In this document: positions 12,820 to 51,095 of the stretch, piece after piece | Numbering within the stretch: position 1 is the first letter of the stretch | How the letters are laid out: each line of letters begins with the position of its first letter | Virus record (IMG/VR): IMGVR_UViG_3300048438_000153 | Span: 62,001 to 126,000 of that record | Reading direction: 5' to 3' (one strand) | Length of the DNA: 64,000 nucleotides | The notes under the pieces: generated by a model | What the model saw: only the letters and a program-made list of their open reading frames with translations | Databases searched by the model: none | Told to the model about the DNA's origin: nothing | Program-made: the position numbers and the translations under genes

Positions 12820-12820
12820 T

Positions 12821-26493: not shown

Positions 26494-26503
26494 TGGAAAG
26501 AAA

Positions 26504-28261: not shown

Positions 28262-28698
28262 TGATCTACAGGCGAGACGGACTCATCTTCACGAAGTTCA
28301 CAGACCCTCATTGGGCGAATCCTAAAGTAGCTCGGATTATGCCCACCCATGAAGGGGGTTCTTGGGGATCTTTCTTAGAGCTGAAAGACACCGAGTGGGC
28401 TCGATTCATTGATGAGGTGTCTCCCGAGTCAATAGAGAGAGCACTACAGGGCGACTCTACGCCCCTAATGAAAGAGGGTCTGCGCGACCCTAGAGGATGC
28501 CTGAAGAGATCCCCTCTTGAGAGAGAGTGCGCCGACGCGAAAGGGTGTACCTCATTTAAGAAATCAGTGTGTTCGTCTGCCTCGAAAAAGACACCTGAGT
28601 GCTTCGCTATTTCTAGGGAGTTACCCCCCTCAGTTCGAGTCCTTCTTTCTGCGTGGAAAGAAGGCTATTATGTAGTCAGAGAAAGGATCAAGACATGA
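28261..28698 (+). CDS. hypothetical Cys-containing protein
   Basis: Operon ORF with coupled stop/start and 5 Cys. Confidence 0.6.
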   Translation: MIYRRDGLIFTKFTDPHWANPKVARIMPTHEGGSWGSFLELKDTEWARFIDEVSPESIERALQGDSTPLMKEGLRDPRGCLKRSPLERECADAKGCTSFKKSVCSSASKKTPECFAISRELPPSVRVLLSAWKEGYYVVRERIKT

Positions 28699-29336
28699 GA
28701 GCTTTAAGCCCGTCTAATCGTAGGGTCTACCCTAACCAACCACAAAACAGCTCAGGCAAGTTGAGCAATAACTCTGAGTACTACGGAGACTTGACGGTCG
28801 CAGATAACAACATCTACCTCTACCAAGACATCACTCCGAAAGCGATGATGGAGCTTGGTATTGCGATCAAGAGCCTGAACAATCAGATTATCTCTCTCAT
28901 CAGTGAGCTAGAGATGTCGAGCGCGCCCACTATCCACCTCCACATCAACTCAGGTGGAGGGTGCGCTTTCAGTGGTCTCGCAGGAGCGAGCCATATCCTT
29001 AACTCTCAAATTCCTGTATCCACCTACGTCGAGGGAAGAGCGGCTTCAGCCGCTACTATTCTTTCTAGCGTGGGCGCGCACAGGTACATCACCGAACACA
29101 GCTTCATGCTAATCCATCAAGTCTCGACAGGTGTGTGGGGGACTTACGAAAACTTGAATGACGAGAAAGAAAGCATGGACTCTCTCATGGAGATGCTTGA
29201 ATCTATTTACCTCAAGCACACCAAGATGAAGAAGAAACAGCTCAAGCAACTCTTAAAGAGGGATCTTTGGATGAACCCTGAGAAATGCTTGGAGCTCGGG
29301 CTTGTTGACGAGATCATCAAGTACGAGCGCACTTGA
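28695..29336 (+). CDS. clpP: ClpP-family serine protease
   Basis: LHINSGGG, AASAAT (catalytic Ser), MLIHQ (His), RDLWM...ELGLVDEI. Start at the ATGA overlap, 28695. Confidence 0.9.
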   Translation: MRALSPSNRRVYPNQPQNSSGKLSNNSEYYGDLTVADNNIYLYQDITPKAMMELGIAIKSLNNQIISLISELEMSSAPTIHLHINSGGGCAFSGLAGASHILNSQIPVSTYVEGRAASAATILSSVGAHRYITEHSFMLIHQVSTGVWGTYENLNDEKESMDSLMEMLESIYLKHTKMKKKQLKQLLKRDLWMNPEKCLELGLVDEIIKYERT

Positions 29337-36868: not shown

Positions 36869-37959
36869 ATGCTCCAACCTATAGGGACGTATTTATCTTC
36901 AAGCCTCACGCCGTTGTAGGAGTACTGTTTCTTCTGAGGACCTATATACCTATCTCTTGTAAACTCTCTGTCAGAGTCTTCTATATACTCCTTAAGTTTA
37001 CGTCTCTCATGATCAGTCATCTTTCTTTTCTTCGGCTTATTGTCAACGTAGATGAGCTTCTTTTTGAGGACTTGCCTTAAGAAAGAGTAAGCGAGGTCAC
37101 TGTGGAGTGTGTTCCTTGCCTTCCTACCGTATGTCTCCTCTATAATGTCCGTCACCTCGTCAGCGTCAACAGCGAGGTGGGCGCTATCCGCCCAATCGTA
37201 AAGGTCTGAAGCGCCTTTTAAGAATGTCTTAATTTCAGACGAGTCAGAAAGACTAGCGAGCTTGAAATACACTTCGACCCCTCTGTACTGAAAGCAAATC
37301 GTATGGCTCTTTTCTTTTAAGAAAGAAAAGCCATGCCTCTTGAGGAGTTCATTTGATCTAAGGGTGTCTTGATACTCGGGCTTACTTTGATACATAGACT
37401 CAGAGTTCCATCTCTGATAGTATTCAGGAAACTCAGGGTACGCGCTCATCTTGTCGAGCCGAGCGATTCTCCCTCTAGAGCTATTCCTTTCTCCCCCTTC
37501 TAAATCGAGTAACTCCGTGAGCCCAATAACAGTAGAAAGAACAGAATAAAGCCCCTTTGTGGTGGAGATCACGACTGATTTCTCAAGTCCTCTTCTGTCA
37601 ATCTCATACCTAGTGATGGGGATCTGCCCCGACCTCAAGCCTGTGGGTCTAATTTTCGAGTCATAAACTCCGAATCTCTCTGTTTCGTCGTGAGTAACCT
37701 TTCCGTTAAAAACGAAAATCTCCCCCCGAAAGATAAGATTGATTCTGAGACCCCCTTTTTTTGAGATAGAGACATCGACTCGATCAACGTCGTCAAGGTT
37801 CGCTTTTATCGCGCCCTCAATCGACTCTTCTTCTTCTCTAGTGTAGCTTTTAAAGAGGTTAAGAAACCCTGACTCTGTTTCTGAAGCAAAGTGATCACCC
37901 TCAAGTCGGGCGACCCTGATCTCTAGGTCGGAAAGGATTTCTGAAGCTGTTCTTCTCAT
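36865..37959 (-). CDS. hypothetical protein with MRRTASEI leader
   Basis: Leader MRRTASEILSDLEIRVARLE, plus an internal RIARLDK. Confidence 0.7.
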   Translation of the reverse strand: MRRTASEILSDLEIRVARLEGDHFASETESGFLNLFKSYTREEEESIEGAIKANLDDVDRVDVSISKKGGLRINLIFRGEIFVFNGKVTHDETERFGVYDSKIRPTGLRSGQIPITRYEIDRRGLEKSVVISTTKGLYSVLSTVIGLTELLDLEGGERNSSRGRIARLDKMSAYPEFPEYYQRWNSESMYQSKPEYQDTLRSNELLKRHGFSFLKEKSHTICFQYRGVEVYFKLASLSDSSEIKTFLKGASDLYDWADSAHLAVDADEVTDIIEETYGRKARNTLHSDLAYSFLRQVLKKKLIYVDNKPKKRKMTDHERRKLKEYIEDSDREFTRDRYIGPQKKQYSYNGVRLEDKYVPIGWSI

Positions 37960-38027
37960 GGTCTGAGCTCCCTTTCTTTGATATGGTTAAGCACACATTA
38001 AAGCCAAGATAAAGAGGATACAGAAAC

Positions 38028-38606
38028 ATGAAGAAAGACCTGTTAGGAGATTGTAACGACCAAAAGATATCTGAGGTCGAGTTCACTTCCATTTTTTGCA
38101 AGAGATGTAAGAATAAAACCTGTGATCGAGCGGGTTGGGCATCTTCTTCTTGGGAAGAAAGAATGTCTACTCAAGCTGTCCGATTTCTCAAACACCCTAA
38201 TATCGTCTCTCAGTCTGAATCCTCTAGGTGGGATGGGTTAGTCAACCTAGAGTCGCTAGAGGTGACAGGATCAATCGAAGTGTGGGGAGTGCCTCAGAAA
38301 GCCCCTCCTGTAGCCTTTGAAGAAGTGAAACCTCAGCCTATCTTTGAGTCTGATTCTACTCCTCCTCTAGTACAGATAGAGACGCCTAAGTCTGAAGAGA
38401 AAGAAGAGTCAGATACCCAACAAAAAGCTGTAGAGAAAGAGCCACTTGAACCTCCTCCCCAACAGGTGAGAAGAGTAGTAAACACACCGCCTCAACAGAT
38501 CATGGTGAGCGGTATAGATAATACACCTAAGAGGAAGTCTTTCGATGAGTGGGCTGTCCCGACTAACAAGCTCAACATCGGCGGTACGTTTAAGATGGGA
38601 GGCTAA
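38028..38606 (+). CDS. hypothetical protein (N-terminal Cys cluster, Pro/Glu-rich linker)
   Basis: C..FCKRCKNKTC motif. Confidence 0.6.
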   Translation: MKKDLLGDCNDQKISEVEFTSIFCKRCKNKTCDRAGWASSSWEERMSTQAVRFLKHPNIVSQSESSRWDGLVNLESLEVTGSIEVWGVPQKAPPVAFEEVKPQPIFESDSTPPLVQIETPKSEEKEESDTQQKAVEKEPLEPPPQQVRRVVNTPPQQIMVSGIDNTPKRKSFDEWAVPTNKLNIGGTFKMGG

Positions 38607-38608
38607 AT

Positions 38609-38839
38609 ATGAGCGAAGAAATGGTCATAGCAAGTTTAGTTAGGAGCGGTGAGATTGTGGTCTGTGGGTACAATTACAAACAGAAACTCAGGATCGACCC
38701 TGAGTGCTACAGGCTCATCGTGACTAAGCCAAATCAAATTAAAGACGAGAGCAAGAAGATCCACTTCATTGGGAGTCTTTCAGATGAAGAAAGAAGAATT
38801 TGGAGATCTTACATGGAGGCGCGTAAGTCCTCTAGGTAA
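38609..38839 (+). CDS. hypothetical protein
   Basis: GGAGG RBS; operon position. Confidence 0.55.
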   Translation: MSEEMVIASLVRSGEIVVCGYNYKQKLRIDPECYRLIVTKPNQIKDESKKIHFIGSLSDEERRIWRSYMEARKSSR

Positions 38840-39161
38840 GATCCCCCGCAAGCATATTAGAAAGTTCCTCAACAAAGACCCTGAAACCATTGATATTATT
38901 AAGAAATGGCTCGACAAGAATGGGCTGATCATTCTCTTTACTCAAAGAAAAGCAAAGGGGTGGGAAAAAGTTTGGGCCACAGATGGGGGCAATATCTATA
39001 TGAATGATGAGGATCACAACCCTACTTCAGAAGAACTCGACATAAGGATCAGGAAAGTATCTGTGAAAGAGCAAGAGCCATTGCGCGAGGATCTGCTAGG
39101 GAAAGACGTGTCTTTGAGAGACAAACTAGAATACTTAAAAGAGATGGAAAGACCCCTGTAA
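38784..39161 (+). CDS. hypothetical protein
   Basis: Its stop overlaps the next start (TAATG). Exact start uncertain. Confidence 0.5.
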   Translation: MKKEEFGDLTWRRVSPLGKIPRKHIRKFLNKDPETIDIIKKWLDKNGLIILFTQRKAKGWEKVWATDGGNIYMNDEDHNPTSEELDIRIRKVSVKEQEPLREDLLGKDVSLRDKLEYLKEMERPL

Positions 39162-40354
39162 TGTTTTTTGAATATGATAAAGAAAAACCAAAGCTCCTAG
39201 ATGAGACAACAATAAATGGCCCGTCAGGAAACCTTTATATCCCCAAAGGGCTTTGGCAAGACATGATCAAATCTTATGAGAAAGAAGATGTCTTGAACCG
39301 CCTCCGAGACTTAATCAACAAGGGAGTGATTTCTTTCCCTTATCAACACTACAGTAAAGAGGAGGTGCTTGACGAGTTTCAGCGACTCAGGAACTCAGTA
39401 GCTTCTTTCTCTGAAAGCGAGTGGGAGTGCAACCGATTGGTGACTGAAGCCCCTCTCTCATTTAGGAGAGGTAGCTACTACACTCCCAAGTCAGCTCGGG
39501 TTGGGAGTAAGGTGTCTGATTTGTTCACACAGAGAATAAGAATGGAGGTTGGACATCAGAGGTTTCTTTCTCCTATAAGAGCGTGGGAGAGTGAAAGAAA
39601 GTCCTTTCTCAACTATCTCTTCAACCCTGATATGTTTGAAGGAGACATCAACGAAAGATGTCTCAGAGTTTCGCTGAGTATGAGGTCATACATTGCGAGT
39701 CAGTTCAAACCTGAGTCAGCTAAGGTCATTTATGATACCTTTCAAGCCAAGAGAGTCCTAGACTTCAGCGCGGGATGGGGAGATAGACTCGTCGGGTTCC
39801 TCGCAAGTAATGCTGAGAGTTATATAGGGATTGACCCTAACTCTAAACTCCACGAACCCTATCAGAAGATTGTCGATTTCTGTGACGTAGGGAAAGAAAC
39901 AAGGTTCATCTGCGCTCCCGCAGAGGAAGCAGATTTAACGGGTGTTGAGGTGGACTTTATATTCACCTCTCCTCCCTATTTCACTCTCGAAAGGTACAGT
40001 CAGGAAGACACTCAGAGTTGGAAGCGATACCCTAAAATCAACGCTTGGCTAGATGGATTTCTATTTCCTACTTTATCTAAGTGTTGGAATTGCCTTGAAG
40101 AAGGGGGGAGAGTACTCGTCAATATCGCCGACGCTTATACGAATGGAGAGCGAGAGGAAATATGTCAGCCGATGTTAAGACATATGGAATCTCTTGGGGC
40201 TACTTACGAGGGAGTCATAGGTTACGAAATGGGAGCGAGACCAGGTAAAAACATGGATAATATCGGCAAGACTTTCTGTGAGCCGATATGGGTTTGGAGC
40301 AAAGGGGAAGCTCCCGAACCTAAGTGGAAATCAGATACGTTTTTGGGAGTCTAA
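39161..40354 (+). CDS. DNA amino-methyltransferase (N4-C/N6-A type), paralogue 1
   Basis: Motif I VLDFSAGWGDR, IGIDPN, motif IV FTSPPYF. Confidence 0.85.
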   Translation: MFFEYDKEKPKLLDETTINGPSGNLYIPKGLWQDMIKSYEKEDVLNRLRDLINKGVISFPYQHYSKEEVLDEFQRLRNSVASFSESEWECNRLVTEAPLSFRRGSYYTPKSARVGSKVSDLFTQRIRMEVGHQRFLSPIRAWESERKSFLNYLFNPDMFEGDINERCLRVSLSMRSYIASQFKPESAKVIYDTFQAKRVLDFSAGWGDRLVGFLASNAESYIGIDPNSKLHEPYQKIVDFCDVGKETRFICAPAEEADLTGVEVDFIFTSPPYFTLERYSQEDTQSWKRYPKINAWLDGFLFPTLSKCWNCLEEGGRVLVNIADAYTNGEREEICQPMLRHMESLGATYEGVIGYEMGARPGKNMDNIGKTFCEPIWVWSKGEAPEPKWKSDTFLGV

Positions 40355-40355
40355 T

Positions 40356-41066
40356 ATGTGGGGTTATTATGGGTCAAAAGCAAAGATTGTTAGTCAATAC
40401 CCGAAGCCGACCAAAGATAAGATTATAGAGCCATTTGCAGGAACTGCTCAATATGCTCTTAAATACTTTGATAGAGACATAGAACTCTATGATAAATATG
40501 AGCTGATCGTAAATCTTTGGAAGTGGTTACAGAAATGTAGCCCAAAAGACATCACATCACTACCTCACTTAAAGGCAGGCGAGAGCGTAGATGATTACGA
40601 ATGGGATTGTGATGAAGCAAAACACTTAATAGGCTTCATCATTTCAGGCGGTGCTACTCAGCCAAAAAAATCAGTGACTAAGTGGAAAGCGGTGATCAGG
40701 CCGAACACTCAAAACTACAAGAAAACTCTCATTTCTTCTAACCTATACAAGATCAGGCATTGGAACATCGAGTGTAAGTCTTATGAAGAAATAGATAACC
40801 AAGAAGCTACTTGGTTCATTGACCCTCCTTATGAAGAGGGGGGGGTATATTACAGACACAGCTCAAAAAACATAGATTTCAGCCACCTTTCAGAATGGTG
40901 TCAGGAACGTGAGGGAGAAGTGATTGTCTGTGAGAAACAAGGTGCGTCTTGGCTTCCCTTTGAACCGCTTACAGAAGTGAAAGGCTTGAAGGCACAGAGC
41001 TTCCAAGAAGCAGTCTGGTTGAAGAACATGAGTTTACCTAAGCAATTAGACTTGTTTGGACTTTAA
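40356..41066 (+). CDS. Dam/D12-like N6-adenine methyltransferase (short form)
   Basis: YYGSK, IEPFAGTA, FIDPPY. True start MWGYY at 40356. Ends KQLDLFGL. Confidence 0.85.
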   Translation: MWGYYGSKAKIVSQYPKPTKDKIIEPFAGTAQYALKYFDRDIELYDKYELIVNLWKWLQKCSPKDITSLPHLKAGESVDDYEWDCDEAKHLIGFIISGGATQPKKSVTKWKAVIRPNTQNYKKTLISSNLYKIRHWNIECKSYEEIDNQEATWFIDPPYEEGGVYYRHSSKNIDFSHLSEWCQEREGEVIVCEKQGASWLPFEPLTEVKGLKAQSFQEAVWLKNMSLPKQLDLFGL

Positions 41067-41069
41067 GAA

Positions 41070-41246
41070 ATGAAGAACCAAATATTTAACGAGGTCTGCT
41101 TAGAAACCATGTCTCGAATGAGCGATAGCTCAATAGACAAAAACATGAATAACATCGGCAAGACCTTCTGTGAGCCGATATGGGTTTGGAGTAAGGGCGA
41201 AGCCCCTGAGCCCAAGTGGAACCAAGACACTTATTTCGGAGTATGA
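41070..41246 (+). pseudogene. 58-aa chimeric relic: beta-class MTase-like N-terminus fused to an SPPY-paralogue C-terminus
   Basis: MKNQIFNEVCLETMSRMSDSSID|KNMNNIGKTFCEPIWVWSKGEAPEPKWNQDTYFGV*. The second half nearly duplicates the end of 39161-40354. Confidence 0.75.
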
Positions 41247-41249
41247 AGC

Positions 41250-42401
41250 ATGAGTCTTACTAGAAAGAGCTTTCTCAACTCTAAAGGTGAGATATACCTC
41301 ACACAGAAAGAGATTAGAACCCTTGCGAAAGAACATGACATAGAAGAGATTATAGAGGTACTCGGTAAGATCGTAGACGAGTTGCCTTTCCCACTCACTG
41401 AGTACACAGATCAAGAGGTCATAACCGATTTTAATAGGTTAAAAAACACACACCTTGAAGTTATACGGGGCGGTTGGGTGAGCCACAGGATAGATGAGGC
41501 GATCTCTCCTTTATACAGAGGGGAGTCAATAAGATTCCCTAAGACAAGAAACATAGGGGGCAAAGTCTCTAATCAATACACAGAGGCGTTAAGGTTATCT
41601 ACGCCTCATGCGAGATACAAAAGCCACAAAGATCTTTGGTATGCTAAGAGAAAGTATTGGTTAAAGTATTTCTTCAACATCAAGATGCACACAGGAAATC
41701 TCGAACAGGGTAAGCTGAGGCAAGGTTTGTCAGGTCAATATTACTGCTCTCAGTTTAAACCTCTCATCGCTAAGTCAATGTACGATACTTTCCAAGCTAA
41801 GAGAGTCTTAGACTTCAGCGCGGGATGGGGAGACAGACTCGTGGGCTTCCTCGCGAGCGGAGCTGAGAGTTATGTCGGGATAGACCCTAACTCTAAGCTA
41901 CATGAACCCTATCAGAAGATCGCTGATTCTATTTCTGATAGGGTAGCTTCGACTTTCGTCAGCCCTGCGGAAGATTTTGATTATAACTCTGTTGAGTACG
42001 ACTTTGTGTTTACTAGCCCTCCCTATTTCGACCTAGAGAGATACAGCAACGAAGGCACTCAAAGTTGGAAAAGGTACTCAGAATTTGAAGAGTGGGTTCA
42101 AAACTTCCTGTTTAAAACGCTAACCGCCTGTTGGAGAAACCTCTCAGACAACGGTCGGATGATAATTAACATATCTGACATATATTCAAAGGGAGCAAAG
42201 AGAGAGATCTGTAGCCCCATGTTAAGACATATGGAGTCTCTAGGCGCTACCTATGAAGGTGTTATAGGGTATGAGATGGCCCATAAGACTAGCAAATCGG
42301 TTAAGCGACACGATCTGCCTTTCTGCGAGCCTATGTTCGTGTGGTCAAAAGGAAACCCACCTGAGCCTCAGTGGAACTCCCAACTCTTTTTTGAGATCTA
42401 A
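41250..42401 (+). CDS. DNA amino-methyltransferase, paralogue 2
   Basis: VLDFSAGWGDR and FTSPPYF. Confidence 0.85.
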   Translation: MSLTRKSFLNSKGEIYLTQKEIRTLAKEHDIEEIIEVLGKIVDELPFPLTEYTDQEVITDFNRLKNTHLEVIRGGWVSHRIDEAISPLYRGESIRFPKTRNIGGKVSNQYTEALRLSTPHARYKSHKDLWYAKRKYWLKYFFNIKMHTGNLEQGKLRQGLSGQYYCSQFKPLIAKSMYDTFQAKRVLDFSAGWGDRLVGFLASGAESYVGIDPNSKLHEPYQKIADSISDRVASTFVSPAEDFDYNSVEYDFVFTSPPYFDLERYSNEGTQSWKRYSEFEEWVQNFLFKTLTACWRNLSDNGRMIINISDIYSKGAKREICSPMLRHMESLGATYEGVIGYEMAHKTSKSVKRHDLPFCEPMFVWSKGNPPEPQWNSQLFFEI

Positions 42402-42537
42402 GACTCCTGACCCTGAGCCTAAGTGGACACAAGACAACTTCTTCGGAGTTTAAGAAATGCAGAACCAAATCTTCAATGAGGAGTACTTCAAGATGTCGAA
42501 AGTAAGACTAGAAAACACTCAGGAGTATCTTTTCTAA
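42402..42537 (+). pseudogene. two relics: an orphan MTase tail (PDPEPKWTQDNFFGV*) and an internally deleted MTase mini-ORF at 42457-42537
   Basis: The mini-ORF MQNQIFNEEYFKMSKVRLENTQEYLF* joins an N-terminus like that at 41070 to a beta-MTase-type C-terminal EEY..S..RL helix. Confidence 0.65.
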
Positions 42538-43238
42538 TGCACCACATACAAGAAAGAAACTGCGCTGAAGCGTGGATTAAAGCCACTCAAGACATCCTCT
42601 CTAAAGGAGAGAATATGGGTGGCCTATACGAGATCCTCAATATGGGGATAGAAATCACTTCCTCTGAGGTATGTCCTGTCTTTGACAGCCATTTCAGAGA
42701 CGTCTTCGGAGACGAGAGAATAGACTATGCTAAGTCTGTCACTTTCATCGAGCCTAAGCCCAACCCTCTCTTTCCCGATTTAAGAGAATACGAGCAGAAC
42801 AAGACGGGGAAATGGACAAATAGCTATTGGGGTCGGATGTTCTCTTGGAACGGCGGATTCAACCAAGTCGAACAGACGATTAAGAGACTGAAAGAGAACA
42901 AGCAAGCCAAGACCATCGTAATCGGAGTCTACGACCCTCAGACTGACGGAAAGAAAGTCATGGGAGGGATGCCCTGTCTGCTCACCATAGACCTCAAGCC
43001 TAGAGGCGGTAAACTTAACCTCACAGCTAACTTTAGGAGTCAGGCTGTCTCCAAGTCAGGGTATGCGGATTACATGGCTCTCGTAGAGTTCTGTGACTTC
43101 CTCTGCAAAGAGAGCGGGTGTCTCGACTTTGGGTTAGTGACTTCTTTCGCTCACTCATGTCATGTGAGGACTCAAAACGGAGAACTTAAGAAATCCAAGG
43201 AGCTGATGAGGAGATATCATGAAGAAATGGGTAGCTGA
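42537..43238 (+). CDS. thymidylate-synthase-fold pyrimidine-modifying enzyme (dCMP hydroxymethylase-like)
   Basis: YWGR, NQVEQTIKRL, MPC (catalytic Cys), FRSQAVSKSGYAD, HSCH. Confidence 0.8.
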   Translation: MHHIQERNCAEAWIKATQDILSKGENMGGLYEILNMGIEITSSEVCPVFDSHFRDVFGDERIDYAKSVTFIEPKPNPLFPDLREYEQNKTGKWTNSYWGRMFSWNGGFNQVEQTIKRLKENKQAKTIVIGVYDPQTDGKKVMGGMPCLLTIDLKPRGGKLNLTANFRSQAVSKSGYADYMALVEFCDFLCKESGCLDFGLVTSFAHSCHVRTQNGELKKSKELMRRYHEEMGS

Positions 43239-44130
43239 TTTTAAGAGTATTCTTTACTCCACTATAGAGGCTCTCCCCCCTGAAGTGAGTCTTTCTTTCT
43301 CGGGTGGCGTTGACTCCTCTATGCTTTTATTCGCTATGATTGATTTAGGCAGACCCCCTACAGAGCTCATCACATTCAAGATTGTAGGGGAATACTCTAA
43401 GGACTTAGATTTCGCTAGAAAGACCGCCCATCATTACGGCATCCCTTTGAGGGTTGCTCAGATCCCAAGTAACCCTCAAAAGAAAGACCTCGAAAGAGAG
43501 ATTAAAGAGATTCTTAGAGAAACGAGAGTTTCTCGGAGCATAGACACTCAGGTGTCCTATGCCTACTCCTACATGACCTCAATCACCTCAACTGACCATC
43601 TTGTTCTCGGGTTCTACGAGGACTTGTACTGCCTCAACAATAAGAAAAACTCTGTCATGTATAGCAATATGCTAAAGGGAAATCTCTCTGAGAAAGAGTT
43701 CGTTTCTTGGATCAATCAAGAAAGAGTCGAAATATATCAAGGCAAGGTTGCAGGGCGCAAAGCTCAGATTGACCACAACTATGTCGTGATCTCTAACTAC
43801 ATTGAGTCTAAGGGTATTCAGACTATCTGTCCCCTCAGAAATCAGGAGATGTTGGATCATTGTCTTAAGAAAGGGTTTGAAGATCTGACGTTCGATCTGA
43901 ATGGAAAGAGAAGGTCTAAGTGGTTCATCAAAGACATGATCTTTAAGAAGTATTTCGACCAACACAAAACCAACATATCTAACTTTCATACATCGGGAAA
44001 AGAAGGTGGGCTGAAAGGTCTGCATCAGAGGGTGCTTCTAACAGGATCACCATACAAAGACACAAGAGCAATTTACAATCAAATACTTAAAGACATTGAG
44101 TTTGAAGAGAGCGCGCATTTCCTATGCTAA
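43219..44130 (+). CDS. asparagine-synthetase-like PP-loop ATP pyrophosphatase/amidoligase (no glutaminase domain)
   Basis: SLSFSGGVDSS, DLDFARKTAHHYGI, CPLRN, SKWFIK. Confidence 0.8.
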   Translation: MKKWVADFKSILYSTIEALPPEVSLSFSGGVDSSMLLFAMIDLGRPPTELITFKIVGEYSKDLDFARKTAHHYGIPLRVAQIPSNPQKKDLEREIKEILRETRVSRSIDTQVSYAYSYMTSITSTDHLVLGFYEDLYCLNNKKNSVMYSNMLKGNLSEKEFVSWINQERVEIYQGKVAGRKAQIDHNYVVISNYIESKGIQTICPLRNQEMLDHCLKKGFEDLTFDLNGKRRSKWFIKDMIFKKYFDQHKTNISNFHTSGKEGGLKGLHQRVLLTGSPYKDTRAIYNQILKDIEFEESAHFLC

Positions 44131-44957
44131 ACCTACACACACCTGTCGAAACTTACCGCATAGAAAGCACTGAGGTAGACGTTAAGAGAGATGACCTTCA
44201 TAATGGAGATCTCGACCTCCCTCCTTGGGCAAAGCTAGAGGGGGTGCGCCAACTACTCCTCTCAGACTGCTTCGATAAAAGAAAGCCCATCGTACACCTA
44301 ACTATCAGAGGTTCATACACAGGGTGGGCTCTTTCTTATTTCGGGAGAGAATACGGGTACGACATCAAGATCGCCTATCCGAAAACCAAGTCTTACCCTC
44401 AAGAAATGCTCGATAAGATCACTCAATATGGAGGGGAACTTGTGCCTCTCCGACATAATATGGTGGCGGTTCTCTCAGCTCAGGTTAAGAAGATGGCTAA
44501 AGAGCGCGGGTGGCAAATGAGCCCCGACGCTTTCAACCACCCTGTCTATGTAAAGTCTTGGAAAGAAAGATCTGCTTCTTTCTTTCAAGAGAACGACTAT
44601 CAGACCCTCGTCATTCAAGGGGGGAGTGGAGTTACGAGTGTTGGACTCATTCAGAGTTTTCTCGGTGTAGATTACATTGCGGGTCAGATGTTTGAGCCCA
44701 CATACGAGGGAAAGAAAGTAATCATCATCTCCACCTCAAGTGTAAAGACCGTGAAGTCTGCGCTCGTATCAAATATGGGGAGTGTGCCTTCGTGTGTAGA
44801 AATCTACAAATCTGAACATGACTTCTATGACGAGATTCCTACTCATGCGACACCGTTCCCCTGTAACCGTCTGTGGGACAAGAAAGCGTGGGTTTGGATG
44901 ACTCAGAATGTGGGTGAGTTGAAGGATAGAACTCTCTTTTGGAACTTGGGGGCATAA
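44124..44957 (+). CDS. PLP-dependent fold-type II enzyme (D-cysteine desulfhydrase/ACC deaminase-like)
   Basis: TPVE...VKRDDL...WAK (PLP Lys), GGSGVT phosphate loop, WDKKAW, LFWNLG. Confidence 0.8.
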   Translation: MLNLHTPVETYRIESTEVDVKRDDLHNGDLDLPPWAKLEGVRQLLLSDCFDKRKPIVHLTIRGSYTGWALSYFGREYGYDIKIAYPKTKSYPQEMLDKITQYGGELVPLRHNMVAVLSAQVKKMAKERGWQMSPDAFNHPVYVKSWKERSASFFQENDYQTLVIQGGSGVTSVGLIQSFLGVDYIAGQMFEPTYEGKKVIIISTSSVKTVKSALVSNMGSVPSCVEIYKSEHDFYDEIPTHATPFPCNRLWDKKAWVWMTQNVGELKDRTLFWNLGA

Positions 44958-44960
44958 GCT

Positions 44961-46184
44961 GTGTTTTTTGAGTACGAGAAAGAACTGCCTAAAACAGATC
45001 TCTCTGACTATAGTCTCCTCAAGAATGGGCAAATCTCTATACCTTCCTATGTATGGCGCGAGATTAAAAACAGCTTCGATAAGAAAGAGGTGATCGAGCA
45101 CATCTCTCAACTTATACAAGATCACAACCTCCCCTACCCGAGTAGGACATACACAAAAGCTGTACTCGACAGGGACTTCAGAAAGCTCAAGAGCGAGTCA
45201 TGTGGTGTGAAAGAGGGATCTTGGGAGTGCTTGAGGACGATCCCTAATGTCACTCTTAAATACCTTAATCGTCAGTGCTACATACAGGCTAGTCAACATG
45301 GTCTAAAAGTCTCGGATCAGCAGACGCATCTCTCTCGCATGAAATGCGCTCACTTCGAGCACAAGAGTCCGTACAGAGAATGGACTCGGCAAGGGTGCAA
45401 GTCGAAGGTCAGATACGTTCTAAGAGTGTTGTGGAGTCTATCAGAAGGAGACGCCCTTAAGAACGGTGTGTGCGAGAAGCAACTGAGAGACTGCTTGAGG
45501 TTGGGCAACTACATGGCGAGTCAGTTCAAGCCCTCATGCGCTAAGACCCTGTATGATTTCTTTCAGGCTAAGAGAGTCTTAGACCTAAGCTCAGGGTGGG
45601 GTGACAGGCTCGTAGGTTTTCTTGCGAGTGGGGCTGAGAGCTATGTCGGGATAGACCCTAACTCTGAACTCCACGAACCCTATCAGAAGATCGCTGACTT
45701 CTGTGACACAGGGAAGGAAACACGATTCATCTGTGATCCCGCAGAGGACGCAGACTTAACGGGTGTTGAGGTGGACTTCGTATTTACGAGCCCCCCTTAC
45801 TTTGACGTTGAAAAGTACAGTGAAGAAGACACTCAGAGTTGGAAACGATATAAGTCGAAAGACCTATGGCTGAATAACTTCTTTCTCCCATCGCTCACTA
45901 AGGCTTGGGAGGCTCTTTCTGAGGGAGGGAGGATAGCCATCAACATCGCAGACAAGGGTCACTCAAGAGAAGATGTGGGCGAGGACATCTGTAGCCCCAT
46001 GTTAAGACATATGGAGTCTCTAGGCGCTACCTATGAGGGGATTATCGGGTATAGGATGAACAAGAGGCCGGGTGACAGAATGGGCGCGGTTGGAGGCGCG
46101 GTTTTCTGTGAGCCGATATGGGTTTGGAGTAAGGGTGAAGCCCCTGATCCCAAGTGGACTCAAGACACCTATTTCGGAGTTTAA
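44961..46184 (+). CDS. DNA amino-methyltransferase, paralogue 3
   Basis: VLDLSSGWGDR and FTSPPYF; GTG start. Confidence 0.85.
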   Translation: MFFEYEKELPKTDLSDYSLLKNGQISIPSYVWREIKNSFDKKEVIEHISQLIQDHNLPYPSRTYTKAVLDRDFRKLKSESCGVKEGSWECLRTIPNVTLKYLNRQCYIQASQHGLKVSDQQTHLSRMKCAHFEHKSPYREWTRQGCKSKVRYVLRVLWSLSEGDALKNGVCEKQLRDCLRLGNYMASQFKPSCAKTLYDFFQAKRVLDLSSGWGDRLVGFLASGAESYVGIDPNSELHEPYQKIADFCDTGKETRFICDPAEDADLTGVEVDFVFTSPPYFDVEKYSEEDTQSWKRYKSKDLWLNNFFLPSLTKAWEALSEGGRIAINIADKGHSREDVGEDICSPMLRHMESLGATYEGIIGYRMNKRPGDRMGAVGGAVFCEPIWVWSKGEAPDPKWTQDTYFGV

Positions 46185-46185
46185 G

Positions 46186-47364
46186 ATGTTTTTCGATTAC
46201 GAAAAAGAGATCACATCTCTCGATGAGATCAAGTATATTAAGAACGGTTATTTCCACATCCTCCCTAGTGAGTGGGAGATGCTTAGAAAGTCTTTTACCA
46301 AGGAAGAAATAAAAGACCATATCGCGCCCATCCTGAGTTCATTACCGTACCCCTATTTCGAGTATTCAGAGAAAGAGCTGAGGAGAGATTTCTCTAAGCT
46401 GAAATCACTCTCGAATAAACTCAAGCAAGGGGAATGGGTAGCTACAAGACAAGCAGCAGAAAGAGACACACTCTTTCTCGGTCAGAGTATCTATATGGAC
46501 TGCTACTACACAGGGAAAGGAATATCTGATCAGTACACTCAAGAGGCGCGCTTTAAATGCTCTTATAGAGCTGTCGGTAACTCCCCTTACGACGAGTGGG
46601 TCAGTGCGGACAAGAAGAACTCTTTCTTAAGATGTTTCTTCGGCATCTCAGAGAGGGACATCTACGAAAGAGGAGGAGTCAACAAGCAGACACTCAGGCG
46701 CGCTCTAAAGATGCACACATACACAGCGAGTCAGTTCAAGGCTGAAGCCTCTAAAACCCTGTATGATTTCTTTCAGGCTAAGAGAGTCTTAGACTTCAGT
46801 GCAGGATGGGGTGACAGGCTCGTGGGTTTCCTCGCTAGCGGAGCAGATAGTTATGTCGGGATAGACCCTAACTCTAAGCTACATGAACCCTATCAGAAGA
46901 TCGTCGATTTCTGTAACACAGGGAAGGAAACACGATTCATCTGTGCTCCCGCAGAGGACGCAGACTTAACAGGTGTTGAGGTGGACTTCGTGTTTACAAG
47001 TCCTCCCTATTTTGACATAGAGAGATACAGTGACGAAGACACTCAGAGTTGGAAACGATACCCTGAAATAGACTCTTGGGTCGAGGGCTTCTTCCTCCCC
47101 ACTCTAAGCAAGTGTTGGAGTGTTCTTTCTGAGGGCGGGAGAATACTTGTCAACATCGCCGATAAGAAGGGCAACGACATCTGTAGCCCCATGTTAAGAC
47201 ATATGGAGTCTCTAGGCGCTACCTATGAGGGTGTTATAGGCTACCGTATGTCAGAAAGAGGAGGGCAAAAGACCACCGTACCGAGCTGTGAGCCGATATG
47301 GGTTTGGTCTAAAGGCGACGCGCCCGAACCTAAGTGGACTCAAGACACCTATTTCGGAGTTTAA
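46186..47364 (+). CDS. DNA amino-methyltransferase, paralogue 4
   Basis: True start MFFDYEKE at 46186; VLDFSAGWGDR and FTSPPYF. Confidence 0.85.
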   Translation: MFFDYEKEITSLDEIKYIKNGYFHILPSEWEMLRKSFTKEEIKDHIAPILSSLPYPYFEYSEKELRRDFSKLKSLSNKLKQGEWVATRQAAERDTLFLGQSIYMDCYYTGKGISDQYTQEARFKCSYRAVGNSPYDEWVSADKKNSFLRCFFGISERDIYERGGVNKQTLRRALKMHTYTASQFKAEASKTLYDFFQAKRVLDFSAGWGDRLVGFLASGADSYVGIDPNSKLHEPYQKIVDFCNTGKETRFICAPAEDADLTGVEVDFVFTSPPYFDIERYSDEDTQSWKRYPEIDSWVEGFFLPTLSKCWSVLSEGGRILVNIADKKGNDICSPMLRHMESLGATYEGVIGYRMSERGGQKTTVPSCEPIWVWSKGDAPEPKWTQDTYFGV

Positions 47365-47367
47365 AGC

Positions 47368-47562
47368 TCAGTCCTCTTTATAAGCCTCAAGAATCTCACC
47401 CCGAAGCGCCTTGAGCTGATCCATAGCTACCTTGAGTTGCTTACGGACGCGAGTTCCTGCTGAGCGGTTCTTCTTAGTGTCGATCTTCTGTGCGTCAGAG
47501 ACGACTTCTTCAGCAGTAAGAATAGTAGTGATTTCCTGTAGGCGATTAGAGATGTTACTCAT
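47368..47562 (-). CDS. Hc1/histone-H1-like small nucleoid-associated protein
   Basis: KKNRSAGTRVRKQL...LKALRGEI resembles the KGNKAAGTRARK family. Start MSNIS at 47562. Confidence 0.7.
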   Translation of the reverse strand: MSNISNRLQEITTILTAEEVVSDAQKIDTKKNRSAGTRVRKQLKVAMDQLKALRGEILEAYKED

Positions 47563-47682
47563 ATCTTTTCTCCGATATAGGTGTTGGTGTGTGGGAATGA
47601 GTCGGAACTGACTCATGAACATTTATACCGATCAGTTTTACTTTTATACCTAGTTAAGAGAAAAGTAGAAAGAGGGACACTC

Positions 47683-48354
47683 ATGAGAACAATCACAGCA
47701 AGAGTCGCCACAAAGTTCTTAAAGAAAGCAGCGGAAAGTCTTGAGATACACATCTATGACTTCGATGGAACTCTGTTCCGTAGTCCTGAAGCTCCTGAGT
47801 GGTGGAGTAAAAGAAGATATGGTCAGTGGCACTCCAACCAATCTTCATTGGGTCAGCCCTTTGTGCCTAACAACCCTTCTTCAGACTATTGGATTAACGG
47901 CGTAGTAGAGGAAGCAAAGAAGTCCATAGCAGACTTGAATACTTGGGCAGTCATGTGTACAGGACGCATCGACACAGGAGCTCTCAGATACAGAGTGGCT
48001 GAGTTACTGAGGCAAGAGGGTCTTGATTTCGATCAGAACTTTCTTAACGACACAGGTAGGCTGACAAGACCCTACAAGAAAGTGACTCTAATCGAACTCC
48101 TGAAGCAGTTCCCACAGGTCAAGAAAGTCGTTGTGTGGGAGGACACTCAGAAAAACCTCGACGCGCTCGAAAGCATCTGCGACAGGATCGGGATCGAGTT
48201 TGAAGGGAAGCTCATTTCTGAGAGGCTTCTCTCTTCAAACCACATCTCAGAGGATGAATACATAGACTTTCTTAGAGGAGAGCTCTCCGCTAAAGAGTTC
48301 ACTCAGATCTATAAGGCTCTACAGAAGAGTAGAAAGAGAAAGCAAGAATTATGA
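47683..48354 (+). CDS. HAD-superfamily phosphatase (Swiss-Army-Knife RNA-repair type) with RVATKFL leader
   Basis: IYDFDGTLFRSP, MCTGR, YKK, WED. Confidence 0.8.
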   Translation: MRTITARVATKFLKKAAESLEIHIYDFDGTLFRSPEAPEWWSKRRYGQWHSNQSSLGQPFVPNNPSSDYWINGVVEEAKKSIADLNTWAVMCTGRIDTGALRYRVAELLRQEGLDFDQNFLNDTGRLTRPYKKVTLIELLKQFPQVKKVVVWEDTQKNLDALESICDRIGIEFEGKLISERLLSSNHISEDEYIDFLRGELSAKEFTQIYKALQKSRKRKQEL

Positions 48355-48671
48355 GAAAGACAGCCTCTTCAAAGAGAGTCGCAAAGATGTACTTCTTAGC
48401 GAGCACAAACTTGCCTCTCTTAGAGGAAGCCTTACCAAACACCTTCTCAGAAATCGAGCCCTTTAACCGAGTCTCTTGTAGTCACGACATTATGGAGAGC
48501 CTCAAGGCTGAGAAAGAGTTCAACCAAGAGACTCTCTTAAGGGTCTTGTCTGAGTACACTCAAGTAGATACCAACCTTGTCATGGCTGATGTCTCTCACT
48601 TATTCTCAGACGTGGGAGTAGCTCAGAAAGAAAAGCTCTTATCAGCTCTCACCACAGATAGAGAGCTGTAG
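48351..48671 (+). CDS. hypothetical protein with MRKTAS-RVAKMYF leader
   Basis: Leader motif; ATGA overlap. Confidence 0.6.
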   Translation: MRKTASSKRVAKMYFLASTNLPLLEEALPNTFSEIEPFNRVSCSHDIMESLKAEKEFNQETLLRVLSEYTQVDTNLVMADVSHLFSDVGVAQKEKLLSALTTDREL

Positions 48672-49451
48672 AGTGAGGTAGGTAGAAAGAGAGTTAAGCT
48701 CTTTCACTACCTTGAAGGGGTCGAACTTAAGACGACGATTATCACCTTTAAGTCTAGAAAGAGGCTTTCGGAGTTTTTTCTGAACCTCTTGAGCCATTGA
48801 CTCTTCAAGCTTTGACGTAAGCGCGAAGGCTGACTCAAGATCCTCGATCAAGTCTTGACCAACTTGACCTTGCTCTGCGTCAAGAACAGCCTCTTCAAGT
48901 GCTCTCTTAAGCTTCATAAGAACAGGCTTGCAAGAGATGACTGATTGGTTCGCCCACGAGCCTGCGTGAGACTCTAGACCCACAGGATACTGACCGAGAG
49001 GGAGCTTCCTGTTGTTTGGAGCGCGGTGGTAGTCTCCAAAGGCAGAAATATAACCCTTCTTAACCTTACTTAGCTCAAGGCGTTGAAGCTCGTACTTTGC
49101 ACCCGCGAGGTTCTTGAAGGTATCGCGTCTCTCTTGGAAACGAGGCCCAAGACGACCATACCTCTTGATGAGTGTGTAGCCCCCGACATTCTGAGGGTTC
49201 TGAACGATCAGCATCTCGTAATACTTAGACTGATTCTTCTCGCTATCAATCTTGTAAAGCATGGAGGCTTCCCCCTCCCTTGCTTTCTGACGTGTAAGAC
49301 CCTCAGATTTGAGGTAGGGCTTACCCGCAGCAGTCTTATTGATTTGTTGAGAGGCGCGCTTCGCCATAGCCTGACGAACATAAGCTCTTTTCTCTAGATA
49401 CTCGATGCGGTCTTCAAGGGCTGTCAGATTTTCTGAAGATAACCTATACAT
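48642..49451 (-). CDS. WGR-domain protein
   Basis: KIDSEKNQSKYYEM...LIKRYGRLG...A..EL..L..SKVKKGY. Confidence 0.75.
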   Translation of the reverse strand: MYRLSSENLTALEDRIEYLEKRAYVRQAMAKRASQQINKTAAGKPYLKSEGLTRQKAREGEASMLYKIDSEKNQSKYYEMLIVQNPQNVGGYTLIKRYGRLGPRFQERRDTFKNLAGAKYELQRLELSKVKKGYISAFGDYHRAPNNRKLPLGQYPVGLESHAGSWANQSVISCKPVLMKLKRALEEAVLDAEQGQVGQDLIEDLESAFALTSKLEESMAQEVQKKLRKPLSRLKGDNRRLKFDPFKVVKELNSLSTYLTLQLSICGES

Positions 49452-50396: not shown

Positions 50397-51095
50397 TCAG
50401 TCCTCGTGAGTGTGGTAGCCCTCTCCGAAGAGAAAGTAACGGTGGAGGTCAGAGAGCAGAGCGTGGGCGTGTGAAATCTTATCCTCAACCCAATCTTCTA
50501 GCTCCTCACCCTCATGTACTTGACCTTCAAGGGTGCGGAGAAAGTCATCCATCTCTCGGATATTCTGAAGGCTCATGTAAGAGCCTCTGTGATGCCCCCC
50601 TCCTTGCTTCACAAATCGGGAATCGAGATCTCTTTCTAGCTCGTCTTCTTCCTCAATCATATCTACGAGCTGATCCGCGAGGTCATCAATCAAGCCCTCC
50701 TCTTCAGCGATCTCATAGAGATCATAATCTGACGCGGTGCGCTTGTAGAACTCACCCTCAGAAATGAAGCCGTCATCGTCGTCATCGAGAAGATCAAAGC
50801 CCTCTTCCCACTCGCGCTCAGAAATCAAACCGTCGCCATCAATGTCGAGGTCGTCGAAGTGAGGGTTATCCCACTCTTCTTCTGAAATAAAACCAGAGTT
50901 ATCTGTGTCGATCTGATCGAAAGCGTACTCCCACTCTTCGGGAGAAAGGCGTCCGTCATCGTCTTCGTCCATGTCTCGGAAAGAAGATGATGAAGTCTTA
51001 GTCTCACCGTAGTCGTGCCTCATGCGTAGAGGCTGTGTAAGAAAGGGGCTTCTCTCGCGAGAGAAATCAGGTGAGAATTTATGTTTGTAGCTCAT
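50397..51095 (-). CDS. four-EF-hand (calmodulin-like) protein with an extra C-terminal domain
   Basis: Loops DEDDDGRLSPEE, DTDNSGFISEEE, DIDGDGLISERE and DDDDDGFISEGE. Confidence 0.85.
   Translation of the reverse strand: MSYKHKFSPDFSRERSPFLTQPLRMRHDYGETKTSSSSFRDMDEDDDGRLSPEEWEYAFDQIDTDNSGFISEEEWDNPHFDDLDIDGDGLISEREWEEGFDLLDDDDDGFISEGEFYKRTASDYDLYEIAEEEGLIDDLADQLVDMIEEEDELERDLDSRFVKQGGGHHRGSYMSLQNIREMDDFLRTLEGQVHEGEELEDWVEDKISHAHALLSDLHRYFLFGEGYHTHED

Follow-up and report, generated by a model that had tools for sequence, protein, structure and literature searches.

A phage gene cassette predicted to build a not-yet-described cytosine hypermodification

The analysed window is a 64,000-nt (64 kb) stretch (positions 62,001 to 126,000) of the IMG/VR record IMGVR_UViG_3300048438_000153, a jumbo phage genome of ∼275 kb from an environmental metagenome. 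Genes for a family A polymerase, DnaB, a SNF2 helicase and baseplate proteins flank the region of interest, supporting its assignment to a phage. Positions 39161-47364 contain a near-gapless run of genes on the same strand, with the following features (the last is a neighbor of uncertain membership):

39161-40354, + strand: SPPY amino-methyltransferase paralogue 1 (397 aa), circularly permuted, with motif I (SAGWGDR) preceding motif IV (TSPPYF).
40356-41066, + strand: Dam-like (D12 class) N6-adenine DNA methyltransferase (236 aa).
41070-41246, + strand: 58-aa ORF whose C-terminal half is a remnant of an SPPY methyltransferase 3' end.
41250-42401, + strand: SPPY amino-methyltransferase paralogue 2 (383 aa).
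42402-42536, + strand: 135-nt spacer holding a second methyltransferase 3' remnant (42411-42455) and a repeated junction (42437-42488, similar to 41050-41101).
42537-43238, + strand: divergent TS-fold enzyme (233 aa), predicted to functionalise C5 of a cytosine nucleotide, product class unknown.
43219-44130, + strand: CmoY-like, glutaminase-less AsnB-fold ATP-dependent amide ligase (303 aa) with an SGGVDS PP-loop.
44124-44957, + strand: fold-type II PLP enzyme of the M6 gp52 clade (277 aa), predicted to process a DNA-tethered α-amino acid, most likely by decarboxylation.
44961-46184, + strand: SPPY amino-methyltransferase paralogue 3 (407 aa, GTG start).
46186-47364, + strand: SPPY amino-methyltransferase paralogue 4 (392 aa).
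47683-48354, + strand: HAD-family phosphatase (223 aa) with a DFDGT motif (Pfam HAD_SAK_1, E 1.3e-13), which is not adjacent to the module in the relative L008.

The eight genes listed in a preliminary description of this sequence are all present, and its observation is confirmed, with two corrections from public gene calls on the identical contig: the Dam-like gene starts at 40356 rather than 40278, and the fourth SPPY gene at 46186 rather than 46072. Spacing between successive genes is -1, 1, 3, 3, 135, -20, -7, 3 and 1 nt, so that the run, described earlier as translationally coupled, is so except for the 135-nt gap before the TS-like (thymidylate synthase-like) gene. This gap and the 58-aa ORF are not empty, and each contains a methyltransferase 3' remnant that had been missed. 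The translation of the ORF ends in FCEPIWVWSKGEAPEPKWNQDTYFGV, and positions 41139-41242 are 84% identical to the 3' end of paralogue 1.

The four SPPY proteins (∼390-400 aa) match Pfam N6_N4_Mtase (PF01555), with E values of 4.7e-7, 3e-8, 4.7e-5 and 2.3e-7 for paralogues 1 to 4, respectively. Paralogue 3 scores below the gathering score, but also matches Methyltransf_25 and contains all of the family motifs. SAGWGDR and TSPPYF are present in all four paralogues, and the family invariants are D201, G205, R209, D225, S270-P-P-Y273, E277 and Q285 (paralogue 2 was included in alignments A2 and A7). The family profile matches the DNA methylase in PDB 2zig in permuted order. The N-terminal 200 aa of the paralogues are 22-42% identical, while the catalytic halves are 61-88% identical. 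The Dam-like protein matches Pfam MethyltransfD12 (E 6e-7) and phrog_56 (E 7e-11), and contains PFAGTA and DPPY motifs.

The TS-like protein just passes the threshold for Pfam Thymidylat_synt (26.2 bits, cut-off 24.3), and matches the NCBIfam methanogen-type TS below its cut-off (E 4.5e-19). Its AF2 model is confident (pLDDT 94), and the best Foldseek matches are MilA CMP hydroxymethylase and the phage HY126 dCMP hydroxylase. The catalytic Cys (PC(L) motif) is conserved, and the residue corresponding to E. coli N177 is Asp, as in T4 gp42 and MilA, suggesting that the target is probably cytosine. This Asp is invariant in the family (D178). However, L143 is Gly and D169 is Ala (Arg in most of the family), matching none of the known product signatures.

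The ligase matches Pfam Asn_synthase in the PP-loop region only. In a Foldseek search, its AF2 model (pLDDT 90.9) matches, over the whole protein, the synthetase domain of β-lactam synthetase, carbapenam synthetase and AsnB. Profile-profile comparison (hhalign) gave matches to PaBG gp306 (98%, E 1.6e-13) and to SpCmoY of phage S-B43 (96.5%, E 8e-10). SpCmoY, a CmoY enzyme published in 2025, ligates glycine to 5-carboxymethylcytosine in dsDNA (PMC12783734), while PaBG gp306 sits next to a CmoA homologue and a C5-cytosine methylase.

The PLP enzyme matches Pfam PALP below the cut-off (30.8 bits, cut-off 35), and phrog_7093 over its full length (E 3e-20). Its only hits among 50,697 phage records are M6-like phages at ∼25% identity, and its closest relatives among the characterised families and libraries searched are orthologues of M6 gp52, which decarboxylates C-α-glycinylthymidine in DNA (PMC8989533). 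Lys37 (equivalent to K36 of M6 gp52) and the C-terminal signature PFPCN..D.K.W.W..F.N.G are invariant.

A gene-neighborhood survey, which the preliminary description had put forward as a check on its reading, showed that the core genes form a conserved module. The order SPPY enzyme, TS-like, AsnB-type ligase, PLP recurs in four phage lineages examined with different polymerases, including the sister jumbo lineage, T4-like marine contigs and family B polymerase jumbo contigs. Such recurrence of the same gene order in unrelated phage contigs is far more than chance. The TS-like enzyme, short ligase and SPPY enzyme also co-occur in a UDG-PolA lineage. In addition, TS-like is fused to radical SAM in P0272, one of the related sequences, and radical SAM is fused to the SPPY enzyme. 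The fusions and the synteny tie the SPPY enzymes to the pathway. The distribution is virus-restricted, with one hit in 185,579 species genomes. A very abundant variant cluster keeps the SPPY enzyme, AsnB and PLP but has no TS-like gene nearby, and the TS-like enzyme may therefore not supply the ligase substrate.

Searches of the window for CmoA, CmoX, ParB, 5-hmdU DNA kinase and aGPT-Pplase gave no match. No kinase, aGPT-Pplase or glycosyltransferase family appears among the Pfam hits on record or run for its called genes. Because only 64 kb of the genome was examined, CmoA, CmoX, a kinase or a dNMP kinase could lie elsewhere.

We suggest, as somewhat more likely than not, that the run is a phage DNA base-hypermodification cassette of a type not yet characterised, aimed at cytosine. 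The genes, their order, its recurrence and the sequence and structure matches are observed, while each of the following steps is inferred by homology or from residues, with no chemical or kinetic data for this DNA. In the first step, inferred from residues, the TS-fold enzyme would attack C6 of a cytosine nucleotide with its conserved Cys and add a group at C5 before replication. This group is not predictable, since the enzyme has none of the published signatures for methyl, hydroxymethyl or hydroxyl products, and has also lost the Asp corresponding to Asp169 of E. coli ThyA, which contacts the folate cofactor (a contact not tested here). In the second step, inferred by homology to an assayed enzyme, the CmoY-type ligase would adenylate a carboxyl group carried by the modified base in DNA and convert it to an amide. 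The version in the window lacks a glutaminase domain, so the amine would be free ammonia, an amine or an amino acid, while sister lineages have a full AsnB with an intact Cys nucleophile at the start of its glutaminase domain (MCG), implying glutamine-derived ammonia. This full-length AsnB passes the NCBIfam asparagine synthase cut-off, and could be a plain asparagine synthetase.

In the third step, also inferred by homology to an assayed enzyme, the M6 gp52-type PLP enzyme would act on a tethered α-amino-acid moiety, most likely decarboxylating it to a primary amine. One carboxylate cannot be both amidated and removed, and the ligase and PLP enzyme must therefore act on different carboxylates, on different sites or on a ligated diamino acid, none of which is shown. 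Lastly, the four SPPY enzymes would act on DNA in different sequence contexts as part of the same pathway, and would either methylate N4 of the modified cytosine or an amide nitrogen, or install the group that the ligase then works on. Divergent N-termini on a conserved catalytic core are, however, also what ordinary sequence-specific methylases look like. The expected end product is a cytosine with an amide- and/or amine-bearing side chain, possibly also N-methylated, that shields the DNA from host nucleases.

The interpretation in the preliminary description is thus partly supported. It had proposed an unknown cytosine modification with an amide or amine side chain, which is the natural prediction from the ligase and PLP homologies. 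It had also held that the gene set does not match the M6-type pathway, but the set is not unrelated to it, since the PLP enzyme belongs to exactly that clade. The parts are less orphan than was claimed: they are of known kinds, and only their combination is new. The suggestion that the paralogous methyltransferases N-methylate the side chain is untested, and their conserved catalytic and divergent N-terminal halves fit sequence-specific DNA-acting enzymes better.

Of the alternatives, all of which we consider unlikely, the one that survives best is that unlinked functions merely sit together. In this view, the five methyltransferases are ordinary orphan m4C/m6A anti-restriction methylases, the TS-like enzyme is a nucleotide-pool enzyme (dTMP, 5-methyl-dCMP or 5-hydroxymethyl-dCMP synthase), and the AsnB-like and PLP proteins are auxiliary metabolic genes acting on free amino acids. 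The methylase-like appearance of the paralogues, the TS-like Pfam score, the passing of the asparagine synthase cut-off by the AsnB of the related locus L013, and the occurrence of AsnB and PLP beside sugar-nucleotide genes in another locus (L040) are consistent with this. Against it are the recurrence of the same gene order, with overlapping reading frames, in lineages with different replication modules, the fusions, the absence of a glutaminase domain from the ligase, and the DNA-level activity of the nearest characterised relative of the ligase and of the closest relatives of the PLP enzyme among the characterised families searched. Asp at position 177 and loss of Asp169 argue against dTMP synthesis.

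Less likely still is a true CmoA/CmoX/CmoY pathway, in which the ligase amidates 5-carboxymethylcytosine made by a CmoX C5-carboxymethyltransferase and a CmoA encoded elsewhere in the genome (or using host carboxy-SAM), and the neighboring genes are add-ons. The ligase homology is consistent with this, CmoY-type clusters are widespread in phages, and only a quarter of the genome was seen. However, CmoA, CmoX and ParB, which in the published system are typically adjacent, gave no match in the window and are not among the annotated genes of the six variant neighborhoods examined, and the ligase gene instead overlaps the TS-like and PLP genes.

It is also doubtful that the module acts on RNA (e.g. 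tRNA) or makes a free modified nucleotide or nucleoside-type small molecule. The structural neighbor MilA is a nucleoside-antibiotic enzyme, PP-loop enzymes are common in tRNA modification, and the SPPY enzymes give weak matches to tRNA CmoB (E 0.002-0.006), but these matches are insignificant and cover only the Rossmann part. The SPPY family profile matches a DNA methylase, the module sits inside the replication gene block, and the nearest characterised ligase and PLP relatives both act on DNA. The least likely alternative, an M6/ViI-type thymidine pathway in which the TS-like enzyme makes 5-hydroxymethyl-dUMP and an unrecognised activating enzyme and transferase attach an amino acid that the PLP enzyme decarboxylates, is suggested by the gp52 clade membership and by the UDG-PolA fusion of one related lineage (a polymerase type linked to thymidine-modified genomes), but is opposed by Asp, not Asn, at the base-specificity position in every family member, by the lack of any real match in the window to LKO4 aGPT-Pplase, 5-hmdU DNA kinase and radical SAM isomerase, and by the radical SAM enzyme of related loci being unrelated to M6 gp53.

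The CmoA/CmoX/CmoY system of Synechococcus phage S-B43, which converts 5-carboxymethylcytosine to its glycine amide (PMC12783734), shares with the cassette a short (271-303 aa), glutaminase-less AsnB-fold ATP-dependent ligase next to methyltransferase-fold enzymes in a phage replication region, and cytosine as the target base. Sister lineages use a glutaminase-bearing AsnB, as the second CmoY cluster does. The cassette differs in having no CmoA (carboxy-SAM synthase), no C5-methyltransferase with an SPPC motif and no ParB in the window, in having as methyltransferase-fold partners amino-type SPPY enzymes without a catalytic Cys, and in the TS-fold and PLP enzymes fused into the operon, which are absent from the published system.

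The M6/ViI thymidine hypermodification pathways (PMC8989533) share the gp52-clade PLP enzyme with the same PLP lysine and C-terminal signature, a TS homologue that supplies the modified pyrimidine, and the logic of tailoring an amino-acid-derived adduct on DNA. They differ in the base-specificity residue (Asn, rather than Asp for cytosine) and in their 5-hmdU DNA kinase, aGPT-Pplase and gp53-type radical SAM isomerase, in place of which the cassette has an AsnB-type ligase and SPPY enzymes.

Phage TS homologues of known product (T4 gp42 dCMP hydroxymethylase, and the 5-hydroxy-dCMP synthases RB69 gp48 and HY126 AfhB) and MilA (PMC13326640) share the TS fold, catalytic Cys, Arg-Ser pair and Asp at the Asn177 position, with MilA and AfhB being the nearest structures. 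Identity is about 15%, L143 is Gly rather than Asp/Glu, residue 169 is neither Asp nor the Asn diagnostic for hydroxylases, the R126-R127 pair is reduced to Lys-Thr, and by sequence the enzyme is closest to the short methanogen-type TS.

Beta-class N4-cytosine/N6-adenine DNA methyltransferases (e.g. Thermus TTHA0409, PDB 2zig) share with the SPPY enzymes the SPPY catalytic motif, the FxGxG-type SAM loop and an acidic motif II residue. The SPPY enzymes differ in their permuted motif order, a ∼200-aa variable N-terminal domain and an invariant Arg after the Gly loop, and are always found beside AsnB-type ligases and, in one lineage, fused to a radical SAM enzyme resembling the B12-dependent class.

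The cassette lies in the 275-kb jumbo phage contig IMGVR_UViG_3300048438_000153, within a replication block encoding an SNF2 helicase, DnaB, a primase zinc ribbon, a family A polymerase and a topoisomerase-IB-like protein, with baseplate genes at the left end of the window. On the + strand from 39161 to 47364, the following genes are found in order:

SPPY methyltransferase (397 aa)
Dam-like methyltransferase (236 aa, starting at 40356)
58-aa ORF
SPPY methyltransferase (383 aa)
135-nt spacer
TS-fold protein (233 aa)
AsnB-like PP-loop protein (303 aa)
fold-II PLP protein (277 aa)
SPPY methyltransferase (407 aa)
SPPY methyltransferase (392 aa)

The gaps between genes are -1, 1, 3, 3, 135, -20, -7, 3 and 1 nt. 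The gene run reported in the preliminary description is confirmed, with two start-codon corrections. In addition, the 58-aa ORF and the spacer each contain a remnant of an SPPY methyltransferase 3' end (window 41070-41248 and 42411-42488), accompanied by a repeated junction sequence (41050-41101 and 42437-42488). These are scars of duplication and deletion, by which the paralogue array has been reshuffled. A scan of 37800-48800 for promoters and terminators gave counts no higher than in shuffled sequences and was therefore not informative about operon boundaries, and a tRNA scan of the window found none. Other genes in the window include:

12451-12858 (-), staphylococcal-nuclease-like gene
17315-17716 (+), NUDIX hydrolase, which could serve as a dNTP pyrophosphatase that clears canonical dCTP, although this was not examined
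20081-20401 (+) and 26480-26857 (+), GIY-YIG / T5orf172-type homing-endonuclease-like genes within the replication block
28653-29336 (+), ClpP-like gene
31835-33346 (-), 503-aa protein with a weak match to the eukaryotic-type topoisomerase I catalytic core (Pfam E 2e-6)
47368-47562 (-), small Hc1-like (histone H1-like) protein gene directly after the cassette, also found near the module in an unrelated jumbo contig (L029:671-841)
48642-49451 (-), WGR-domain protein (Pfam E 2.6e-13) just downstream of the cassette
50397-51095 (-), protein with faint EF-hand matches, also just downstream

The TS-fold enzyme barely passes the Pfam TS threshold (score 26.2), and its best family match is the short methanogen-type TS (E 4.5e-19, below the cut-off of that model). 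An AlphaFold model built on 38 relatives is confident (pLDDT 94), and its nearest solved structures are the CMP hydroxymethylase MilA and the dCMP hydroxylase of phage HY126, ahead of true thymidylate synthases. In alignments with E. coli ThyA, T4 gp42 and the LKO4 dUMP hydroxymethylase, the catalytic Cys and the Arg-Ser pair are conserved, while the base-specificity position (E. coli Asn177) is occupied by Asp, as in T4 gp42 and MilA. This Asp is invariant in 38 family members. Product signatures for TS homologues were given in a 2026 paper (PMC13326640), with L143 to Asp/Glu indicating hydroxymethylation and D169 to Asn indicating flavin-dependent 5-hydroxylation. Here position 143 is Gly and position 169 is Ala, or Arg in most relatives, and the enzyme fits none of the known classes, including dTMP synthesis, which had been named in advance as an outcome that would count against a role in hypermodification. 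The family proper is small (about 13 clusters at 50% identity with E below 1e-50), entirely metagenomic and essentially virus-restricted, with one MAG contig among 185,579 species genomes. More distant short TS-like proteins (P0289, P0308, P0323, P0297, P0316 and P0338) are fused to a pterin-binding domain (DUF4346), MtrA, NUDIX, Ham1 or a class I methyltransferase, suggesting that short TS-fold enzymes recruit their one-carbon cofactor or partner activities in trans.

For the ligase, Pfam, NCBIfam and PHROG models match only the SGGxDS PP-loop region. However, a confident model (pLDDT 90.9) matches by Foldseek the whole synthetase domain of beta-lactam synthetase, carbapenam synthetase and asparagine synthetase B, with a TM-score on the query of about 0.6 over ~300 columns. 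The earlier assignment as an AsnB-like ligase is correct, and no glutaminase domain is present. Its only relatives in cultured phages are "asparagine synthases" of PaBG and Erwinia jumbo phages. In Pseudomonas phage PaBG (126705-129859), genes annotated as "DNA cytosine methylase", "tRNA methyltransferase" (which matches CmoA at E 7.6e-38) and "asparagine synthase" (gp306) form a CmoX/CmoA/CmoY-type cluster next to a ParB-like gene, corresponding to the system described in 2025. In that system, CmoX transfers a carboxymethyl group from carboxy-SAM to C5 of cytosine in DNA, and CmoY, a short AsnB homolog, then ligates glycine to the carboxylate in an ATP-dependent reaction on dsDNA (PMC12783734). 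The window's ligase family matches PaBG gp306 (hhalign 98%, E 1.6e-13) and the assayed S-B43 CmoY (96.5%, E 8e-10).

The PLP enzyme matches phrog_7093 over its full length (E 3e-20). Among 50,697 phage records, its only relatives by tblastn are from M6-like phages (about 25% identity over the full length), where the gene is located in the thymidine hypermodification cluster. M6 gp52 was shown to decarboxylate C-alpha-glycinylthymidine in DNA, while ViI gp226 decarboxylates O-serinylthymidine (PMC8989533). The PLP lysine (K37, equivalent to gp52 K36), the Gly-rich loop and a distinctive C-terminal PFPCN..D.K.W.W..F.N.G signature are invariant between the window's family and the M6-type protein, and cellular fold-II enzymes are far more distant.

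Among the METHYLTRANSFERASES, the four SPPY proteins share an intact SAM loop (LDFSAGWGDR), an acidic motif II (GID) and TSPPYF, in an order that is circularly permuted relative to PF01555. Their catalytic halves are 61-88% identical, while their first 200 residues are only 22-42% identical, the pattern expected if each recognizes a different DNA sequence. The Dam-like protein contains PFAGTA and DPPY motifs. Weak matches of the SPPY enzymes to CmoB (E 0.002-0.006) were considered as evidence for carboxy-SAM use, but were rejected because they cover only the Rossmann part.

A survey of gene neighborhoods, proposed at the outset as a way to test the TS-ligase-PLP grouping, found related clusters in several viral lineages, with synteny read from gene tables rather than computed, and without co-occurrence statistics for the four families across IMG/VR. 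The sister jumbo lineage contains the TS-like, ligase and PLP genes (85%, 49% and 70% identity), flanked by six SPPY paralogues. T4-like marine contigs contain an SPPY enzyme (546 aa), a TS-like gene (52%), a full-length AsnB starting MCG and a PLP gene (54%), and jumbo contigs with a family B polymerase contain the same set. A UDG-PolA lineage contains the short ligase, the TS-like gene and a radical-SAM-SPPY fusion protein, but no PLP gene. In addition, one protein in the 1.8-billion-sequence library (P0272, 676 aa) fuses this TS-like family to a radical SAM domain. Both this fusion and the radical-SAM-SPPY fusion (L024:10705-12966 and L037:5006-7243, loci from related contigs) occur in phage lineages that lack the PLP gene. 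Synteny and two fusions therefore tie the TS-like enzyme, the SPPY enzyme and the AsnB-type ligase into one pathway, with PLP or radical SAM enzymes serving as alternative tailoring steps. The radical SAM enzyme of related loci has no similarity to the M6 gp53 ortholog, and a stand-alone homolog (in locus L016) instead resembles B12-dependent class B enzymes.

A very abundant marine variant (loci L042/L043, 1-7852, and L040/L041) qualifies this picture, since it has no TS-like gene nearby. It encodes, in order, an SPPY methyltransferase-like protein, a full AsnB, a 701-aa unknown protein, a 2-hydroxyacid dehydrogenase, an Asp/Arg-hydroxylase-type 2-oxoglutarate oxygenase and a gp52-like PLP enzyme, and in L040 it lies beside sugar-nucleotide genes. 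The 701-aa protein showed no similarity to the TS-like profile (probability 1.7%) and no Pfam or PHROG hit. A 390-aa P-loop plus GNAT protein beside the TS-like gene in L029 was considered as a kinase-acetyltransferase of the PaMx11 type, but was dismissed as it shares only a Walker A match with the 5-hmdU DNA kinase.

We conclude that this is a real, conserved, virus-specific module, best described as phage DNA hypermodification aimed at cytosine, which brings together known enzyme kinds in a new combination and whose product is unknown. The interpretation in the preliminary description, an unknown cytosine modification with an amide or amine side chain, is partly supported. Homology to assayed enzymes provides an ATP-dependent ligase of the type that amidates a carboxylated cytosine in DNA, and a PLP enzyme of the type that decarboxylates DNA-tethered amino acids. 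By contrast, the assignment of the TS-fold enzyme as a C5-modifying enzyme of cytosine nucleotides, with unknown product, is inferred from residues, and the participation of the SPPY enzymes is inferred from linkage. The source of the carboxylate was not identified, nor was the way in which the ligase and the PLP enzyme share a side chain, since one carboxylate cannot be both amidated and removed; raw long-read signal from the source samples, if such reads exist, was not inspected. Possible solutions, all of them inferences, are a side chain with two carboxylates, ligation of a diamino acid through its side-chain amine followed by decarboxylation to a terminal amine, or two separate marks, with the SPPY enzyme and ligase making an N-linked amide in analogy to CmoX and CmoY, and the TS-like enzyme and PLP enzyme making a C5 adduct.

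A more speculative reading, which we consider unlikely but compatible with the evidence, is that the permuted SPPY enzymes are not plain m4C/m6A methylases but sequence-specific group transferases belonging to the pathway. By analogy with CmoX and CmoY, they would install a SAM-derived carboxyl-bearing group on an exocyclic nitrogen. This group could be carboxymethyl from carboxy-SAM, or 3-amino-3-carboxypropyl from SAM, which would give the ligase a carboxylate and the PLP enzyme a free alpha-amino acid. Separately, the TS-fold enzyme, having lost Asp169 (which contacts the folate cofactor), would use a non-folate electrophile at C5. The cassette would then write a doubly modified cytosine without any kinase or pyrophosphorylase step, by a route to DNA hypermodification not described before.

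Phage DNA hypermodifications decide whether restriction enzymes, CRISPR nucleases and sequencing chemistries can read a phage genome, and their enzymes also become tools for site-specific DNA derivatization. This module combines two recently characterized DNA-acting enzyme types (the CmoY ligase and the gp52 decarboxylase) with two unstudied families (a TS clade with no known product signature and a permuted SPPY transferase family). Literature searches for this gene combination found no description, one of them finding only the CmoY paper. A megablast search of the 8.2-kb run against 50,697 phage records gave no match, and no cultured phage in the collection searched carries a close homolog of any core gene, although the families are abundant in marine and freshwater viral metagenomes. 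The chemistry encoded is therefore both widespread and unseen.

Comparison with thymidylate synthase ThyA, which has the catalytic Cys146, Asn177, Asp169 and four phosphate-binding Arg, shows that the TS-like enzyme retains the catalytic Cys and Arg166, but Asn177 is Asp, Asp169 is Ala, and Arg126-Arg127 is Lys-Thr. It shares Asp177 with the T4-type dCMP hydroxymethylase but lacks the acidic residue at position 143, and no glycosyltransferase family appears among the Pfam hits on record or run for the called genes. The D169N signature of the flavin-dependent 5-hydroxy-dCMP synthases (RB69 gp48 / AfhB) is also absent, although AfhB is a top structural neighbor. The SPPY proteins carry the (S/D/N)PP(Y/F) catalytic motif, SAM-binding Gly loop and acidic motif II residue of exocyclic-amino (N4C/N6A) DNA methyltransferases, invariant in 16 family members, and match PDB 2zig in permuted order; methyl transfer and the substrate were not assayed.

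In relation to the M6/ViI-type thymidine pathways, the cassette shares the gp52/gp226-type PLP enzyme with its PLP lysine, but the TS-like enzyme lacks the Asn177 of dUMP hydroxymethylases. The kinase and transferase steps used in every characterized amino-acid-type pyrimidine pathway were not found in the window, where the LKO4 aGPT-Pplase (amino acid:DNA transferase), 5-hmdU DNA kinase and radical SAM isomerase gave no real match (the only kinase hit, E 0.012, being the DnaB Walker A motif), and no such kinase or transferase family appears among the Pfam hits for the called genes. In relation to the CmoA/CmoX/CmoY system, tblastn of S-B43 CmoX against the window gave no hit, and tblastn of S-B43 CmoA gave no real hit (E 0.3), whereas PaBG CmoA was detected as a positive control; the remaining ~210 kb of the genome was not inspected, and the full contig was not annotated for CmoA, a C5-methyltransferase, a dNMP kinase or a dCTPase. 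No C5-methylase family appears among the Pfam hits, no methyltransferase-domain gene other than the five appears in the gene calls, and the window's methyltransferases have SPPY with no Cys, in place of the SPPC motif and carboxy-SAM-binding Arg of CmoX. The component shared with this system is the glutaminase-less AsnB-fold ATP-dependent amide ligase, which corresponds to CmoY in fold and profile similarity, its activity not having been assayed here.
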